A DNA stretch of 64,000 bases from Rebecca billardiae RCC1528 (taxonomy: Eukaryota; Protista; Haptophyta), in contig OZ251238.1 of assembly GCA_965240325.2 (NCBI GenBank), positions 1,054,001-1,118,000 of the forward strand. Reading direction: 5' to 3'. Below are positions 39,688 through 47,442 of this stretch, in pieces; the stretch's first letter is position 1; every line of letters starts with the position of its first letter. The translations under genes and the position numbers were made by a program. Below the pieces are notes generated by a model, which was not told the origin of the DNA, searched no databases, and saw nothing but the letters and a program-made list of their open reading frames with translations.

Positions 39688-39760
39688 GCCCTGATAGCTC
39701 AGTCGGTAGAGCGCACGCCCTTTAAGCGTGTGGCCCCGGGTTCGAGCCCCGGTCAGGGTG
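39688..39760 (+). tRNA. tRNA-Lys(UUU) with C at position 33
   Basis: Cloverleaf GCCCTGA/TCAGGGT, D arm GCTC/GAGC, anticodon stem CACGC/GCGTG with loop CCTTTAA, T arm CCGGG-TTCGAGC-CCCGG, discriminator G, downstream TTTT terminator. Confidence 0.92.
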
Positions 39761-40269
39761 CTACTTTTGCGCGTAGCCGTTTTCACCGACTTTTGACGCA
39801 CTTTCGCCCACTGTCGCTCGGCCGATTATACCGGGGCGCCGCTGTGCCACTGACGCAGCATACTACCGTCGGATACCGCGCTACTTGAAAACGACTGTAC
39901 GCTTGCTTCGTATGCGGAGCGCTAACGGCGTGCAGGCATAGGGTGATCAAGCGCGGGTCCGAGTGCCGGTCCGCCGCAGCGCGTCGCCGCGGGCTGTCCG
40001 AAACGTTTGCCGAGACGATCGGGAGACTTCATATCGAGTTCGGCGGCCGCCGCGTCCGCATCATCAGCAGCAAGAACTCTGAGTCGGCGGGGTAGTGACC
40101 CGCGCCGGGCCCGGTCCGTATAACGATCCGTATAATAACGGTCAGGCCGCCGTGAGCCAACGGCACCGGGTGAACTGAGACTCGGAGTCGACTGCTGTGG
40201 CAACGGACGGCGGATCGCTGCTTGCAACGGCCCAGGTCGGTCCGAGCCGCTGCCCGCGCGGGGAGCCGG

Positions 40270-43200
40270 TCACGACGACAGCGCGGTGCCGGGCGGTTCG
40301 GGTGCTTCAGACTGTTCTGCCGCTGCCGCCGGCGCTGCTGATGCCGCGGCGTCTGCACCGCCAGCACCGCCCCCGGAATCGTTCGGCGCCACCTTCTCGG
40401 CCGCAGCGGTCGGCGGGGGTGCCACCTCCGACGCCTGGGCAGCGTCCTCCGCTTTGGGCTCCGCCGCAGGCCTCGCGCCGCCGTTGGCAGCTGGGCTCAC
40501 CCTGTCCGCCTCCGCCGCGCCGGCCGGCGCCGCAGCGTGCCCAGCTGACTCAGCCAACCTAGCTGCGGGCGCGGCCGCCGCCGGCTCCGCCGCTGCGCCC
40601 GCGGGTGGCTCAGCGCGTGCGTCGTCGGCAGGGGCGCGCGCCGGCGCGGCGGCGCCAGGCGCCGCCGCCGCGGCGGCCATCGCGGGCTCCAGCGGCGCGC
40701 GCGCGGCCTGCGGCGGCGGCGTGGGCGCTTGCTGCTGCTGGTGGGGCGACGACTTGGCCGACGCGCCCCCGCCTGATGCCACCGGGTGGGCGGGCCGTGC
40801 GCTCGCGGGCGTGGGCCTCGAGCTGCCAGCCAGACCGATCCCGACGCCTGTCGGGGTCGGGGCAGGCCCCGGCGCCAGGCCAGTCGCCCAGAAAGGGGCC
40901 AAGGAGGCGGCGGGCGTCGACGCGTCGCCTCTGCAGGTGGGCGAGACGTCGCCGGCGGACGCGGCGCGGGGCGCGGAGTGCGGCCTGTGTCCGCCGCCGC
41001 CCCCGCAGCCACCCCCGCCGCCGCCGTGCGTCGCGCCCGAACGCGAGATTGGCCATAGGACGGCGTGCGGCGTGTTCGCGTCGTTGGCGGGCGCGACCAC
41101 GAATCGCTCGCGCAGGTGAGCCTCCAGGGCCTGCTCCGAGGCCAGCGGCAGCCCGTGGGTCTGAGCGCGGCGAGCGCGCGGCGCGGTTGGCGCGGAAGGG
41201 GTGCGCTCGGGTGAGACGCCGGATGGAGGGAGGGGTACTGCCAGTCTCGCACGTGCGTGAGGCGCTGGGCGCGCGGGGCGCGCCGTGCAGCCGCCGTGCA
41301 GGAGCGGTGCGCGGTGCGCGCTCTCGCGCGCAGGCTGGGAGATCGCAATCTCGGCGCGGGCGCAGCGCACCTCTGCGAACGTGCGCACGAGCTGCGGCAG
41401 CGGCGCGCCTTGCGGCACGTGCAGCGTCGCACTCTGCCCGTGGGGCAGAACGACCGTCAGCCGCGCAAGCAGCCGCGGCGGCGGGCTGCTCGGGCGCGGG
41501 CTCGCGTCACCGGAGCCGCCCGCGCCGGCGTGGCGCGCGGGGCCACTTGGCTGATGCTGGTGGTCGTCGTTCTCGTCGTCGTCGTCGTCGTCGTCCACGT
41601 CGCCGCAGCACGCGGACGAGGAGCCCTGCGTGTTTCGGCTGAGGCCGTTGATACTCTCGGCAGAAATAACGGCACTGCGCGCGCCAGGGAGAAGTGAGCA
41701 GCGCGGCAGCGTGCGCGCGCGGCGGGGCGGGGCGCGCGGGCGCGTCGCGCGCTCAGCTGTGGGCACGGGCGCTGGCATGCCGGGCCGTGTGCCGCGCTCC
41801 GCGGCGGGGTGCGCGCGCTGCCCGGCACGCGCGCAGGCTGTGCTCCGACGCGCGCGGCACGGCATGCATGGGCCGGAGCGCGACCGGGCGCGCGCACATA
41901 CCTGGGCGGGCTTGCGGTGCGGCGGAGCGGGCTCGGGGTTCGGTGTCGTTCGAATGGGTCACCGGCTTCGCCGGCCGTCTTCGGCTCGGGGCTTCGGCCG
42001 CGCGCGGCGCCGACGCAGCCGCCAGCCAGCTCGACGCCGCCCGCGCCGCGATGGCCGGAGCACGAGTGCGCGGCGTAACCGCCGGCGTAACCGCCGCCGC
42101 TTGGATAGGAGCACCCGTGTGCGTCCGAATCCGTCGAGCCCCTGCGCTCGCCGTAGATGCCGGGCGCGCAGCTGCTGCTCGTCGAGGCCCGCCACCCGCG
42201 GAAGCCGTACGGGTGCACGTGGTGGCTATGGCTGGAGATCGCGCCATCGGCCGCGGCGCCCGCGCCGCCGCGCGCGCACCGCGACTCCGCCTCAGCAAGG
42301 GCCGCGCAGAGCAGTCCGCTCAGGGCCAGGACGGCCAGCAGTGCCACGCCCTGGCTCTGCGCCTGCGCGAGGAGCTGGCCGCTCGGCGCGACGACGACCG
42401 CGCCCGCCGCGCCGATCGCCGTCCCGAGCCCGAGCGACCGCAGGGCGTCCGCGCGCTTCCGCCGCGCCGACGCGCCGAACGTCAGCGGCTCGACAAGATC
42501 GATCAGCATGGCCGCCGGCGCGGAGAGCGGAGCGTGCGCGCGCGCGCGAGCGCGCTGCGCGACGACGACGCCGGCGGCACTCGCCGCGCCCGCGGCGCAG
42601 CCGAGCAGCGCGGCCGCGGCGAGCGGCAGCAGCGCGCACGCGCCGGAGGTCGCCAGCAGCCCAGCGAGGGCCCCTAGCATCGCCGGTGCCAACGCCGGCC
42701 GCTCGCGCGCCGCGCCGACGTGCACGCACGCCGCGGCGCCGAGGCCTGCGAGCGCTCCCAGCTGCGTCTGCAGCAGCGCGGCGCGCAGGACGGGGCGCGG
42801 GTCCGCGGCGAACGAGTCCTCGCGGAAGCCCTCGTCGGCGAGGTCGTCCGCGAGCGCGCCCGCCGTGTACGCGACCGCGCTGCCGGCGGCGCATGCCGAC
42901 GCTGAAGCGTACATCAGCAGAGCGCCAATGGCCGTCTGCGTCGTGCCACCGCGGGCATCCTCGGTGACGTCCGCACTTCCGTCGAGCTCGGCGCGAATCA
43001 GCCTCGTGAGCGCGTCGCCGCCGCCGCCGGCGCGAGCCGAGCGCACGGCGCGGAAGCTTCCGCGCTCGACACCGCCGCCGCCGCCGCCGCCCACGCTGTC
43101 GCCGCCGTCGACGGCGAGCGGAGGCATCGCCGCCGTCGCGCGCCACGAGAACGCGGCCGCTCCGACCAGGCCGGCACCGAAGATGCACATGCACCCGCCG

Positions 43201-44736
43201 ACGTCGATCGCGCCGACGGGCGAGCGCAGCCAGCCCTCTGGCGCCCAGAGCGCGTGCGCGCACGGCAGGTACGCGAGCAGGGCCCACGTCGGCGGCAGCC
43301 ATGCCGGCACCGTCGGCCCGCCCGGCCCGCCTGCGAGGGCGAGCAGTGACGCCCCAAGCGCGGCGCGTACGCCCCAGAAAAGACAGGCCGCGACGGCCGC
43401 GCCCGCGCGCGCCGCATCCTCCGCCGCCGCCTCATCCGCCGGCCCGCCGCGGCTCGCGTCCTCGTAGTCGAACGCGCGCGGCGTGATCGGCAGGTACTGC
43501 GCGAGCGCGCGGACCACCGCGGCGGACGAGCCGACCAGCTGCGGCAGCAGCAGCTGCGCGACAACCGCGAGCGCGCCGCCAAAAAGAGCGGGTATCGTCG
43601 CCATCAGCACGAGCTGGTGCGCCGGCCGCGGCTGCTCCGAGCGCACGCCGAGCGAGCGGAGCGCGGGCGGCGCGTCGAGGCCGCTCGGCGCGCGCGCCAG
43701 GCCAAGCAGTGGCACCGACGGGCGACGCTGAGTCACCGGACTCACCTCCGGATCGCGGACGTCCGCGACGATTGTGACAGAGCGGCCCGGCGGCGCCTGC
43801 GAGCCCGCGTCGCCGCCGCCGCCGGTGCGCATGGCCGACTGGCGGGTCGCCGCGGCCGAGGCGGAGGCGCGCTCGGGAGAATCGTTGGGCGCTCCCGCCC
43901 CGCGCGGCGCGGCGCCCGGGCCCGGCGGCGAGCCGGCCAGCCGGTCGGAGAAGGAAAGTCCGGACGAGAAGAGAAGTCCGGATGCGCCCAGCCGCAGCGA
44001 GAGACCGGCGTCCCCGCCCGCCACCTCCTCCGCGGTGAGCGTGCCGTCGTCCAGCGGCGCGCTCAGCAGCACGACGCCGAGGGGCCCCAGCAGCGTGATC
44101 AGCGCCAGGATATTCAGGAGCGCCGCTCGCCTCCGCAACTGCTGGTGCCATTCGGCGCCGCTGCCGCCGGCGCCGCCCGGCGGCGGCTGCGGGCGCGTCG
44201 GCCCGCGCCGCGCGCCGCCGTCCGCGCCGCCCGCGTCGGCGCGCCCGCGCGTGCCGCGCGAGCCGGCGCCGATCATCGCGTCGTCCGCGGCGCTCGCGCG
44301 CGCGCGGAAGATCGTCGTGCGCTCGCTGTGCACGCGGCGCGCGACGTCGGCGGCGCCGCAGCCAAAGCAGGTGCCGCCGCCGCCGTCGGCGGCACCGCCC
44401 ACCGGCTCGGCGAAGGCGCACCAGCCGAAGCCGTGCTCGCGCGCGAGCGTGATGCACAGCGGCGCGGAGCGCACGCGCGCCGCGAGCAGCGCGCCGCAGC
44501 CCGCGTGCTCAAAGAGCGCTGCTGGGTGCGCGGGGTCGTCAGCTGCCGCCCCGCCGCCGCCCGGCCCTGGCACCGGCCGCGGCCAGCCCGGAGGCTCGGC
44601 GCTCGAGTGAGGCGGCGGCGGTGGCGGCGAGGCGGTCCAGCCGATGGCGGGCGAGCGGTGGGGCGGCGGCGACGAGTGGGAGACGACGCCGCCGTGCGCA
44701 GCCGCGCCACCGCCGCCGCCTCCGCCACCGATGCTA

Positions 44737-44768
<32 letters not shown>

Positions 44769-46022
44769 GCCGCCGCCACCAGCCACGAACGCGCCAACCC
44801 GATAGATGTCGAAGGCGGGGTCGGGCTCGGGCGTGCGCAGTGCCTGCTCCTCGGTGCACGCGTAGCAGTACCCCGTCGCGCTCGAGAAGGAAAAGTACGG
44901 CTGGCCGCGCGCCCACGCTGTCTCACTCACAGAGCGTGCGCACCCTTCCACGCTCACCGCCGCAGTGTCCACGGGCCAGCGCCGCAGGCCGCAGCGCGCG
45001 CGCGCGCGCGCGACGCCCGCCGCGTGGGGCGGCGCGGGCGGCAGCGCGCGCGGCGCGGGCGAGGCGCTTGGCGGCGAGTGCGCCACCAAGTGCGCCGCGC
45101 CGCCGCCGGCCGCGCCGCCCGCGCGCCCGCCGCCGCCGCCGCGCGGCGCGCGCGGCGACTTGGGCGGCGGTGGCGACGACGGCTGCCCGGCAAAGCGCAC
45201 CGTCTCGAAGATCGCGTATCGCACGTCCGACCAGCGCTTCCCGAGCTGCTCCGGCGTGCACGCGAAGCAGTACTGCAGCTGCGGCGAGAAGTTGAAGTAA
45301 GGCGCGCCCTCCGCCTCCGAGATCACAATCTCGGCGCACGCGCGCGGCGACGGCACCTCTGCGGAGACGCGGGGCGGCGCGAGGCAGGGCGCGGCAGCGA
45401 GGGGCGAGGGCACGAGCGACGCGGTCACACAACGCAGCGCCGGCCGGCCGGGACGGACGCGGTGTGGCACCAGGCGGCGCGTACGGCCACGGGGCGATGG
45501 GTGTGGCGGTCGCGCCGCGCGGCGCCGGGCGTGTGGCTGCCTGGCAGCCGAGCCCAGGCGGCGCGCGGCGCGGCGCGCAGGGCGCGCACCGGTTGCTGTG
45601 GGCGAGTGCCACGCGCCGCAGCGCGCCGCGGGGTAGATCGCGCCGAGCGCGCCGGGTGAGAGCGGGCTTGGTGACGGCGACGGTGGCGGCGCGGGGTGCG
45701 CCGCCGGCGGCGGCGAGCGCAGCGGCGGCGGGGGCGAGGGTGGCGGCTGGTGCAGCTCGACGAAGTCGGTCGTGGCGTACACCGCGTACCCCGCCGCCGG
45801 CGTGCGCTCGTCATTCGCGCCGCACGCGAAGCAGAGCTGGTAGGGGCCGCCAAAGGCGAAGAAGGGAGCGCGGCGCGCTGCCGCGTTGAGCGCGCATTCG
45901 TCGGCGCCGTCGGCGCTGCCGATGGGCGCGCCGCAGCCAGCCTCTGTCGCCACCGGCGCGGGCGCCTGCTGCGCCGCGGCGCAGCCCAGCAGCGCGGCCG
46001 CGAGCACGGCGAGGCGGAGCAT
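40270..46022 (-). CDS. Large membrane protein: signal peptide, four Cys-rich repeats, degenerate ammonium transporter (Amt)-like domain, long low-complexity tail; exons 46022-45590, 45358-41902, 41674-41371, 41160-40270
   Basis: Signal MLRLAVLAAALLGCAAA; four 'CG..x..C..x..F.F..x..C(F/Y).C..x..(I/V)(F/Y)' repeats; Amt-like motifs 'QLVLMATIPALFGGALA', 'WALLAYLPCAHALWAPEGWL..GAIDVGG', 'GALLMY..AAGSA', 'GALAGLLATSGACALL'. Three GT-AG introns join the ORFs in frame. Confidence 0.8.
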
Positions 46023-46274
46023 GAAGGCGCGCGCGCACGAGGGTCGAGCAGCGTCAGCTCGCACGAAGGCGGCGCGGGTTCGTAGCGCCGACTCGATGAA
46101 GACTCCGCTGCCGAGATTCGTCCCAAATCTGTTGCGGGCTTGCGGGCTTGCGCGCTGGCGGCAAGCGGAGAGCTCTCCCGCTCTCCGGACTGCGCGTTTG
46201 TGACCGAATCAGCGCCCGGCCGTGAACTTCGCTGATGGTGCGCGCGGCGGCCCGGCGCGCCTCTCACTTTCAGG

Positions 46275-47442
46275 ATGGCGACTGCGCAAACACTCGCCGC
46301 GGATGTGAAGGACGTGATCGAGGATCAGCTCGAGCGGAACCTCTCGCCGAAGAAGCTGAAGCGCTACCTCGAGTTCCTCGGACCCGCGCTACTCGTCATC
46401 ACCTATGCCGAGGACGCCTTGCGGTGCGGAGCACGTGCCGCGCGCGTATTCGGCACGCGCGCGCCCAGCGCACGTGCGCCTGACGCCTCGCTCCGCCGCC
46501 GCGCGCGGCCCGGCGCCCGCCGCGCGGCGCAGCATCGTGATGCGCTGGGGCGAGCAGATGCAGTACATGACCATGCAGATGCGCTGGCCGCGCAGTATCG
46601 CGTGGCTCATCCTCATGCTCTCGCTCGTGACGCAGGCGACAGGCACGGCGGGCGTGCTGGCGCGCCGGCAAGTGAAAGCGTCGTGTTACGCGCTACTCGC
46701 GTTCACCGCGCTGCAGCCGGTCGTGTACGGGCAGCTCGACCACCCGGACTTCATGTTCCGCACGCTCACGCTGCTCGGCGGCCTGCTCCTGCTGCTGCGC
46801 CACGAGAACGACATTGCGAACGCGGGAAAGCGCAACTCTGGCAAGCAAGCGCTCAGCGGGCTCACGGGAATGGCGGACGGTCCGGGCGGCGAGGGCGGCG
46901 CCGCCGCGGGCTCGCGGCTACAGCTGATCGGGCGCGTGCTGCTGATGGTGATCTTCTTCTTCCAGGGCGCGCGCCACCTGTACACGCGCGGCCTCACCCT
47001 CTTCTCGCTCGTGGGCTACCTGGCCCTCCTCGGCCTGTGCGCGCTCGTCGTCGTCGGCTTCAAGGCGCGCTGGTCGGCAGTGATCCTCGCCGTCTCGCTC
47101 GGCATCTCGAACCTGTGGCTGTACCCGTTCTGGATGGTGCGCCGCGCGCGCCGCGCGCCATGCGCGACCCGCGTGGGCACGTGAGGCGCGGGCCCCACGC
47201 CAGAGCACTCGGGCCGCGTGCGCCCTGCCCTCCGCCGACTCGCGTGCGCACCGCCTCGTCGCTGTCGCCGCGCGTGCCGCGCGCGTCGCGCCTGCCGCTG
47301 CGCGCAGATGGATAACCGGATCCGCGACTTCTACAAGTACTACTTCTATAACACGCTCTCGATCATGGGCGGCCTGCTGCTGCTCGCGCTGTATGGGCCA
47401 GGCGGGCTCTCGGTCGACCACGGCGCAAAGAAGAGCCTCTAG
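46275..47442 (+). CDS. SURF4: SURF4/Erv29 ER cargo receptor; exons 46275-46423, 46533-47136, 47308-47442
   Basis: '[12 protein letters not shown]...W.EQ..Y', '[10 protein letters not shown]', 'LQLIGRVLL', 'VVGFKAR', '[19 protein letters not shown]...[12 protein letters not shown]' with a KKxx ER-retrieval end. Confidence 0.93.

Follow-up and report, generated by a model that had tools for sequence, protein, structure and literature searches.

Human RhD and RhCE are subunits with the Amt/Rh fold that are regarded as non-transporting structural anchors. Within the Amts, non-translocating receptors exist, Ks-Amt5 and Sd-Amt1 (PMC11152129, PMC5764959), in which the motifs of the Trp/Ser, the Phe pair and the His pair are retained and transducers are fused at the C-terminus (PMC11152129). 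An N1/N2 signature of the form Q-x6-E-x15-N-x2-D-F/T-x54-60-T-x2-S/T has been proposed for ammonium receptors, and Pflueger et al. mention, without detail, Amts with N-terminal fused modules (PMC11152129). Here we describe a gene on the minus strand of a 64,000-nucleotide stretch of DNA from the haptophyte Rebecca billardiae RCC1528 (contig OZ251238.1, positions 1,054,001 to 1,118,000; referred to as the window, with positions counted from its first letter). It most likely represents an intact nuclear gene for one large surface protein, in which four predicted PAN/apple modules precede a diverged Amt/Mep/Rh-fold core. PAN modules together with an Amt-fold core constitute a previously undescribed domain architecture within the Amt/Rh superfamily. 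An earlier reading of this DNA (the original prediction) knew of no described protein built in this way, and in a full-text literature search no paper was found combining 'ammonium transporter' with 'PAN domain' or 'apple domain'.

A diverged Amt/Mep/Rh-fold core

Judged by sequence comparison, the membrane region of the predicted protein is a remote but real homologue of the Amt/Mep/Rh family. Amino acid numbers follow the minus-strand frame A, in which codon i begins at 46064-3(i-1).

42273..43625, minus strand: diverged 11-helix Amt/Mep/Rh-fold core, amino acids 814-1264 (profile, BLASTP and hhalign matches; AlphaFold2 model)

The scaffold motifs of the family, which the original prediction had placed in this region in their proper order, were recovered as colinear matches in three libraries and to AmtB itself, at an overall identity to the family of about 20%. 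The Pfam profile PF00909 matches the core in two colinear stretches with an E-value of 1.3e-4 (21.2 bits, just under the cut-off), and TIGR00836 matches with an E-value of 1e-5. In a phmmer search of the core against PDB sequences only AmtB and Mep2 were retrieved (best E 2e-4), and BLASTP against Escherichia coli AmtB yielded two colinear high-scoring segment pairs, with E-values of 1e-5 and 1e-3. With our own Amt hidden Markov model (HMM), built from 92 bacterial Amt genes found by the pattern DFAGGTVVH together with AmtB, the core scores 16 bits, whereas the maximum among 2000 shuffles was 4.9 bits. Segment by segment, hmmsearch aligned amino acids 926-966 with AmtB 134-173 (21.8 bits) and amino acids 1120-1170 with AmtB 253-303 (12.5 bits), in this order, and gave weaker matches of transmembrane helix (TM) 6 to AmtB 201-223 and of TM11 to AmtB 359-366. 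An hhalign comparison of the single sequence with the Amt profile extended over 316 columns from TM1 to TM11 (query 7-450, AmtB 37-396; E 2.5e-5, probability 75%), and in language-model space every neighbour of the core is a PF00909 cluster (0.89, 203/256 features).

An AlphaFold2 (AF2) model of amino acids 640-1265, calculated with 54 Amt rows in the alignment, reached a mean predicted local distance difference test (pLDDT) value of 63 and a predicted template-modelling score (pTM) of 0.61, with pLDDT values of 70-95 in TM4-TM11. This Amt-based model superposes on AmtB 14-382 with Z 33.6 and a root-mean-square deviation (rmsd) of 3.0 over 322 residues, in agreement with the AmtB-like fold expected from the original prediction; structures of AmtB twin-His variants are among its best structural matches. 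Compared with AmtB, the core carries long inserts in two places, TM5-TM6 and TM9-TM10.

Replacement of the conduction residues

Three stretches of the core correspond to the motifs around the pore of AmtB.

43179..43205, minus strand: D-V-G-G-C-M-C-I-F, equivalent of AmtB D160-F-A-G-G-T-V-V-H168; Asp kept, His168 replaced by Ile961 (Phe962 if ungapped)
42879..42914, minus strand: TM6 motif M-Y-A-S-A-S-A-C-A-A-G-S, equivalent of AmtB L208..S219; W212, F215 and N216 replaced, S219 kept
42423..42449, minus strand: D-A-L-R-S-L-G-L-G, equivalent of the AmtB stretch D310..H318; His318 replaced by Leu1211 or Gly1214

At neither position of the twin-His pair is there a His, and at neither position of the Phe gate is there a Phe, according to both MAFFT and hhalign. 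AmtB H168 corresponds to I961 (F962 in the ungapped version), and H318 to L1211 in the hhalign alignment or to G1214 in the MAFFT alignment, with no His present in amino acids 1196-1230. The only His residues within amino acids 640-1265 are at 640, 816, 937, 1115 and 1177. Of the gate residues, F107 is replaced by L903, in a TM3 alignment of low confidence, and F215 by C1058; further replacements are F103 by V899, Q104 by R900, W212 by A1055, N216 by A1059 and T273 by S1140. The two alignment methods agree on the equivalents of H168, F103, Q104 and F107. Equivalents of AmtB F31, Y140, P142, H145, W148, D160, G163, G164, S219 and D310 are kept, and with them the residues of the vestibule and recruitment site, W148 and S219, together with D160, which correspond to W940, S1062 and D954. 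The Amt C-terminal regulatory motif is absent from this protein. The ammonium-receptor N1/N2 signature, searched as a regular expression over the open reading frame (ORF), gave no match, and its sub-motifs are also absent within amino acids 631-1270. Because the pore motifs and the N1/N2 signature are missing and Pfam comparison found no transducer domain in the tail, the protein is not of the Ks-Amt5/Sd-Amt1 kind.

Most of the motif replacements read by eye in the original prediction hold, with corrections. The substitution of DFAGGTVVH by DVGGCMCIF, with the D160 equivalent retained and His168 lost, is confirmed by the alignments, as is that of VHG by SLG at the His318 position. The motif WFGFN is indeed replaced, and aligns to ASACA, one residue off the proposed SASAC. 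The assignment of FQxxF to HQLVLM was wrong: the helix containing HQLVLM aligns to Amt TM1 (LVLFMTIPG..ALFYGG) and not to TM3, and BLASTP, the HMM, MAFFT, hhalign and the model all identify HQLVLMATIP..ALFGG as the TM1 motif (LVLFMTIPGIALFYGG). The statement that only the D160 equivalent is kept was too strong, considering that Y140, P142, H145, W148, G163, G164, S219 and D310 also have retained equivalents.

Four cysteine modules with a predicted PAN/apple fold

The part of the protein preceding the membrane region is composed of four cysteine modules separated by low-complexity linkers.

45747..45959, minus strand: module 1, four Cys (module alignment)
45590..45746, minus strand: Pro-rich linker and N-terminal half of module 2, with its first Cys and the C-G motif (Cys spacing; module 2 part 45641-45590)
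45183..45358, minus strand: module 2, C-terminal part (module alignment; tblastn match to module 3)
44781..45011, minus strand: module 3, the module that was modelled (AF2 and structure searches)
44526..44780, minus strand: linker with Gly runs, Pro-rich (sequence)
44280..44525, minus strand: module 4, five Cys, with a Gly insertion (module alignment)

The four related Cys repeats on Pro/Gly linkers that had been described before are borne out by pairwise identities of 22-38%, with an invariant F and an invariant CxxC. They share the pattern C-G...C-A...P-Y-F-x-F...Y-C-F-A-C and keep a four-Cys spacing of C-x12-16-C-x20-27-C-x2-C; modules 2 and 3 match each other in an internal tblastn search (E 8e-4). 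Each of the four modules was compared with Pfam, module 2 as separate exons, and no match to PAN (PF00024, PF14295), WSC or any other family was obtained, even at an E-value of 10; a profile of the four modules gave no match to PDB sequences.

At the level of the fold, the comparisons converge on one clan. The AF2 model of module 3, calculated from the four-row alignment, has a pLDDT of 73.7 and a pTM of 0.65. In a VIA structure search, which is independent of Foldseek and covered 48,161 representative chains, the top 22 matches are all of the PAN/apple/WSC/MANEC type, with Z 8.9-4.6; next in rank come a single unrelated chain (Z 4.5) and a mixed tail. The best of these are TgMIC4-A5 (Z 8.9, rmsd 2.1, 67 residues), SML-2 (8.6) and MIC4 (8.0), and further matches include AMA1, plasminogen, HGF, kallikrein, factor XI and Wsc1 (Z 6.7). 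The top structural matches, TgMIC4-A5 and SML-2, are galactose-binding apple domains. Foldseek gave probabilities up to 0.97, but E-values of only ~0.07; a shape search of the ESM Atlas gave a template-modelling score of 0.72 to a PAN_1 cluster. The language-model features of module 3 adjoin PAN_1/PAN_4 clusters at 0.93, and the ten best family-bearing matches all belong to that clan. The models thus support the notion that the Cys modules fold as PAN/apple domains, in which a helix packs against an antiparallel sheet. The PAN/apple-like ectodomain of the original prediction accordingly stands as regards the fold, as judged by VIA, Foldseek, the Atlas and the features, and falls as regards membership in a Pfam family.

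Within the linker, at 44700-44780 (minus strand), there are 15 Gly, S-I, eight Gly, more Gly-rich residues and then a Pro run, a stretch that could be length-polymorphic.

Reading frame and coding signal

Frame A is without a stop codon from 46064 to 41457, i.e. over 1535 codons (4.6 kb), at a locus with a base composition of 70-80% GC. Its first ATG is at 46022, and frame inspection places this start and the stop at 40270-40272 (minus strand) where the original prediction had put them.

45969..46022, minus strand: start codon and predicted signal peptide (M-L-R, Ala/Leu core, AAA/QQ; third-position GC climbs here)

The third-position GC content is 0.86-0.98 in the proposed exons, with 0.85 in the tail exon of the second frame, against 0.76-0.81 without periodicity in two in-frame candidate introns and ~0.69 in the flanks, and it is because of this codon-position pattern that we consider frame A to be in use. 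From module 4 over the extra hydrophobic helix H0 described below to the junction with the following loop the value is 0.88-0.98, with the peak (0.98) between module 4 and H0, where there is no stop. Long ORFs on the plus strand (e.g. 43617-45659) were rejected as genes, being antisense low-complexity Arg/Ala stretches with the wrong codon-position GC; such antisense ORFs reach 680 codons and are the usual by-product of this GC composition.

An independent Logan contig (run ERR14847148) is 99.4% identical to the window, and on it a gene caller arrived at this ATG, strand and frame as well. There are no differences across the 900 nucleotides (nt) of the gene that the contig covers, compared with five substitutions and three insertions or deletions (indels) in the other 2.4 kb. 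All differences of this contig fall outside the coding part of the PAN-Amt gene, and one of its peculiarities is the lack of 9 nt at 46154-46164, in the intergenic or promoter region between this gene and its divergent neighbour.

Candidate introns and the C-terminal tail

Three introns are predicted, and a fourth is possible; the exons behind the core form a long tail.

45359..45589, minus strand: candidate intron 1, 231 nt, in frame, G/GTGCGC...CAG (codon-position GC 0.87/0.81/0.81, periodicity gone)
43632..43745, minus strand: possible 114-nt in-frame intron, GTGAGT..CAG (strong splice pair; stretch still coding-like)
42040..42272, minus strand: tail still read in frame A (third-position GC of 0.89, coding-like; Amt C-terminal regulatory motif absent)
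41676..42039, minus strand: zone of change from frame A to the tail frame, with candidate intron 2 within (several GT..AG pairs fit)
41371..41675, minus strand: tail exon in the second frame, containing an acidic run of Asp and, of the small segment named in the original prediction, the first half (third-position GC 0.85)
41161..41370, minus strand: candidate intron 3, 210 nt, in frame, G/GTGCGC...CAG (GC 0.81/0.76/0.76, periodicity gone)
40270..41160, minus strand: rest of the Ala/Pro/Gly-rich tail and stop (last ~330 nt not clearly coding in this frame)

The strongest argument for candidate intron 1 is that its excision brings the spacing between the first and second Cys of module 2 to 16, within the range of the other modules (12-16). 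Intron 3 is plausible and has the same donor, GTGCGC, as intron 1. As to intron 2, frame A is coding-like down to ~42040, and the signal then appears in a second frame (41675-41371 and from 41160 onward). A donor at 42279 for intron 2 was judged unlikely, as frame A is still coding-like to ~42040. The candidate donors at 45589, 41370, 41897 and 42279 (minus strand) share the unusual consensus G/GTGCGC. Donors in this GC-rich genome may typically have this form, a point that could aid gene modelling elsewhere.

When the tail pieces were compared with Pfam as separate exons, not joined, no domain was found and only chance-level matches appeared. At 41580-41620 (minus strand) the tail exon has an acidic run of eight Asp with Glu/Asn, after which come His/Gln; its Pfam matches (Osteopontin, BDHCT_assoc) are at chance level.

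Topology of the extra helix

Between module 4 and the Amt core lie a hydrophobic helix, additional to the eleven of the Amt fold, and a long loop.

44061..44144, minus strand: extra hydrophobic helix H0, amino acids 641-668 (hydropathy 2.46; GC pattern 0.83/0.41/0.93)
43626..44060, minus strand: 145-residue low-complexity loop from H0 to the Amt core (AF2 pLDDT <50)

H0 is preceded by RRR and followed by an acidic stretch, and is a helix in the AF2 model outside the AmtB-aligned part. The loop holds a weakly hydrophobic stretch, amino acids 685-705, with a hand-computed Kyte-Doolittle mean of ~1.0 over the 20 residues G-L-S-L...S-F-S. The charges in the loops of the core agree with the canonical orientation, in which TM1 enters from the outside, with ~17 Lys and Arg residues on the canonical cytoplasmic side versus ~7 on the outside. 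Three arrangements are conceivable that would reconcile this orientation with extracellular modules or dispense with it: a second extra span made up of amino acids 685-705, an Amt-only isoform initiated internally at Met597, or an inverted core.

Neighbouring genes and relatives

A SURF4/Erv29-like gene (PF02077) with introns lies at 46275-47400 (plus strand), head-to-head with the PAN-Amt gene, the ATG of which is ~250-380 nt away. Among outside sequences, the best relative of the SURF4-like gene is an MMETSP transcript with 58% identity. A tRNA-Lys gene (anticodon UUU) is found at 39688-39761 (plus strand), ~500 nt beyond the 3' end of the PAN-Amt gene. No paralogue of the PAN-Amt gene was found within the window.

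Interpretation and alternatives

We consider it somewhat probable that the gene encodes a non-conducting Amt-fold scaffold or receptor displaying PAN modules, a type-I-like multi-pass surface glycoprotein. Its parts would be arranged in the order signal peptide, four PAN/apple modules on Pro/Gly stalks, H0, a disordered loop, the Amt core and a low-complexity tail. Having lost the conduction residues, the core would no longer translocate ammonium and would serve as a membrane scaffold, in a manner perhaps analogous to the use of the same fold as an anchor in RhD/RhCE. Such a scaffold would probably be trimeric, like all Amt/Rh proteins, and could then display as many as twelve lectin-like PAN modules, with a glycan or a protein as the ligand, for contact between cells, between cell and scale, or between the cell and its prey or a pathogen, with the cytoplasmic tail as a possible link to the cell interior. 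For the pseudo-transporter with a PAN ectodomain put forward in the original prediction, the structural part is supported by hhalign, the language-model neighbours and VIA, while the functional part is drawn from the lost residues. With considerably more doubt, one may extend the idea to a receptor family in haptophyte-type algae, in which a non-conducting trimeric Amt-derived core couples a ligand, bound by the PAN modules or at the Trp/Ser vestibule, to the tail. Receptors or adhesins of this sort, derived from an ammonium transporter, would form a class new among eukaryotic surface proteins.

A number of observations weigh against a non-conducting, PAN-displaying scaffold. The core misses the family cut-offs (21.2 versus 23.2 bits for PF00909, 24.7 versus 343 for TIGR00836), and its AF2 model is circular, with pLDDT values of only 54-68 in TM1-TM3; because the alignment was Amt, the model expresses compatibility with the fold rather than independent proof of it. 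With the PAN modules outside and H0 as the sole extra span, TM1 would be reversed, unless amino acids 685-705 span the membrane, and the positive charges of H0 are on the 'wrong' side. As W148, S219 and D160 are kept, ligand binding in the vestibule or some conduction may persist. The joining of the exons into one mRNA and the three introns are predictions. An exhaustive phmmer search with amino acids 640-1265 against 1.84 billion representatives had no match at an E-value of 1e-3, not even to the protein itself; scans of metagenomes, one with the core and one with the aligned modules, confirmed no relative, and word-based searches with the core and with modules 2-4 found none either, the search with the modules being swamped by low-complexity candidates. 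This blank is weak evidence, because even the neighbouring SURF4 gene has a nearest database relative of only 58% identity. Sampling of the lineage is poor, and a surface protein that evolves fast could readily be missed.

The conflict in topology would vanish if the locus gave rise to two products, either separate PAN and Amt-like proteins or, by initiation at Met597, an Amt-only isoform with H0 as its signal anchor. H0, flanked by RRR on its N-terminal and by acidic residues on its C-terminal side, does resemble a signal peptide or an N-in anchor, the core would gain its canonical orientation, and in-frame ATGs are present at amino acids 597 and 764. We nevertheless regard two products as unlikely: the stretch from module 4 to H0, with a third-position GC of 0.98 and no stop, leaves no space for a 3' end together with a promoter, and because the coding signal is strongest at precisely this place separate genes are hard to accommodate. 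The core might, on the other hand, still conduct, its all-hydrophobic pore serving as a path for gas (NH3/CO2) or, unselectively, for ions, with the PAN modules as accessories. Its 11 helices are complete and free of stops, and the residues that replace those of the pore (Ile/Phe, Leu/Gly, Leu, Cys) are small or hydrophobic, not charged. Some substitutions of the AmtB twin-His pair alter selectivity rather than simply closing the pore. However, every hallmark has been lost together, including W212, Q104, N216 and the C-terminal regulatory region, and the PDB titles of the AmtB twin-His variants call the pair 'essential for substrate conductance', so that we find continued conduction quite unlikely.

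The kept vestibule could instead point to an ammonium or amine sensor, in which NH4+ bound there would be relayed through the core to the tail without translocation. The alignment of W940, S1062 and D954 with the AmtB recruitment-site residues speaks for it, as does the precedent of the non-translocating receptors Ks-Amt5 and Sd-Amt1 (PMC11152129, PMC5764959). Those receptors, however, keep the Phe gate and the twin-His pair and sense at N1/N2 sites in their interior, to which the His pair gives access, while here the N1/N2 signature is absent, F107 is Leu and no transducer domain was found in the tail; moreover, the kept residues sit in the structurally most conserved motifs of the family. 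A sensor of this type is therefore distinctly unlikely in our judgement. Finally, a decaying or never-expressed relic would account for the sub-threshold family scores and for the failure to find relatives in 1.84 billion representatives, and a search for RNA sequencing runs listed none. Against this stand 4.6 kb of open frame with third-position GC well above intron and flank levels throughout, a divergence so deep without a stop or frameshift that it argues for long-term constraint, and the contig of a second individual, unchanged in 900 nt of the gene as opposed to five single-nucleotide polymorphisms and three indels in the other 2.4 kb. We hold a relic to be very improbable.

Sensor-repurposed Amt/Rh proteins have so far kept their conduction motifs and added cytoplasmic output domains; the loss of all these motifs combined with the gain of extracellular lectin-type modules would be a different route from transporter fold to receptor or trimeric anchor. 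The protein would also serve as a natural experiment on the requirements of an Amt scaffold relieved of transport, with the kept W148, S219 and D160 and the TM4 and TM8-9 motifs marking structural rather than functional constraint. For algal biology, the gene points to unstudied surface proteins that may recognise glycans, cells or viruses.

Comparison with known systems

With the Amt/Mep/Rh proteins (PF00909; E. coli AmtB) the gene product shares an 11-helix core that is colinear from TM1 to TM11, the kept scaffold residues and the charge bias of the loops. It departs from them in being devoid of the twin-His pair, the Phe gate, W212, Q104, N216 and the C-terminal regulatory motif, and in possessing an extra N-terminal helix, an ectodomain of ~600 residues, a tail of ~500 residues and long inserts at TM5-TM6 and TM9-TM10. 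The sensor Amts Ks-Amt5 and Sd-Amt1 (PDB 6eu6, 8qj3) resemble it in employing the Amt fold beyond net uptake, and both are among the structural matches. They are bacterial, have all pore motifs, sense at N1/N2 and signal through C-terminal cytoplasmic transducers, a histidine kinase or HAMP-GGDEF, whereas the haptophyte protein has neither those pore motifs nor the N1/N2 signature and carries its added modules at the N-terminus and, by prediction, outside the cell.

RhD/RhCE in the erythrocyte ankyrin complex (PDB 7uzq) match the core model structurally with Z 29; these proteins, members of the Rh branch, lack an ectodomain and form hetero-trimers with RhAG, and the comparisons made here showed no sequence link to the haptophyte protein closer than the superfamily. 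The PAN/apple surface proteins, such as TgMIC4, Sarcocystis SML-2, AMA1, the HGF N domain and the yeast sensor Wsc1, have in common with it the module fold, the four-Cys core and the arrangement of tandem copies on a membrane-anchored stalk. The modules of the haptophyte protein differ from theirs in the motif P-Y-F-x-F...Y-C-F-A-C and in having no Pfam PAN/WSC match, and the anchor would be a transporter fold with many membrane passes where theirs is a single helix.

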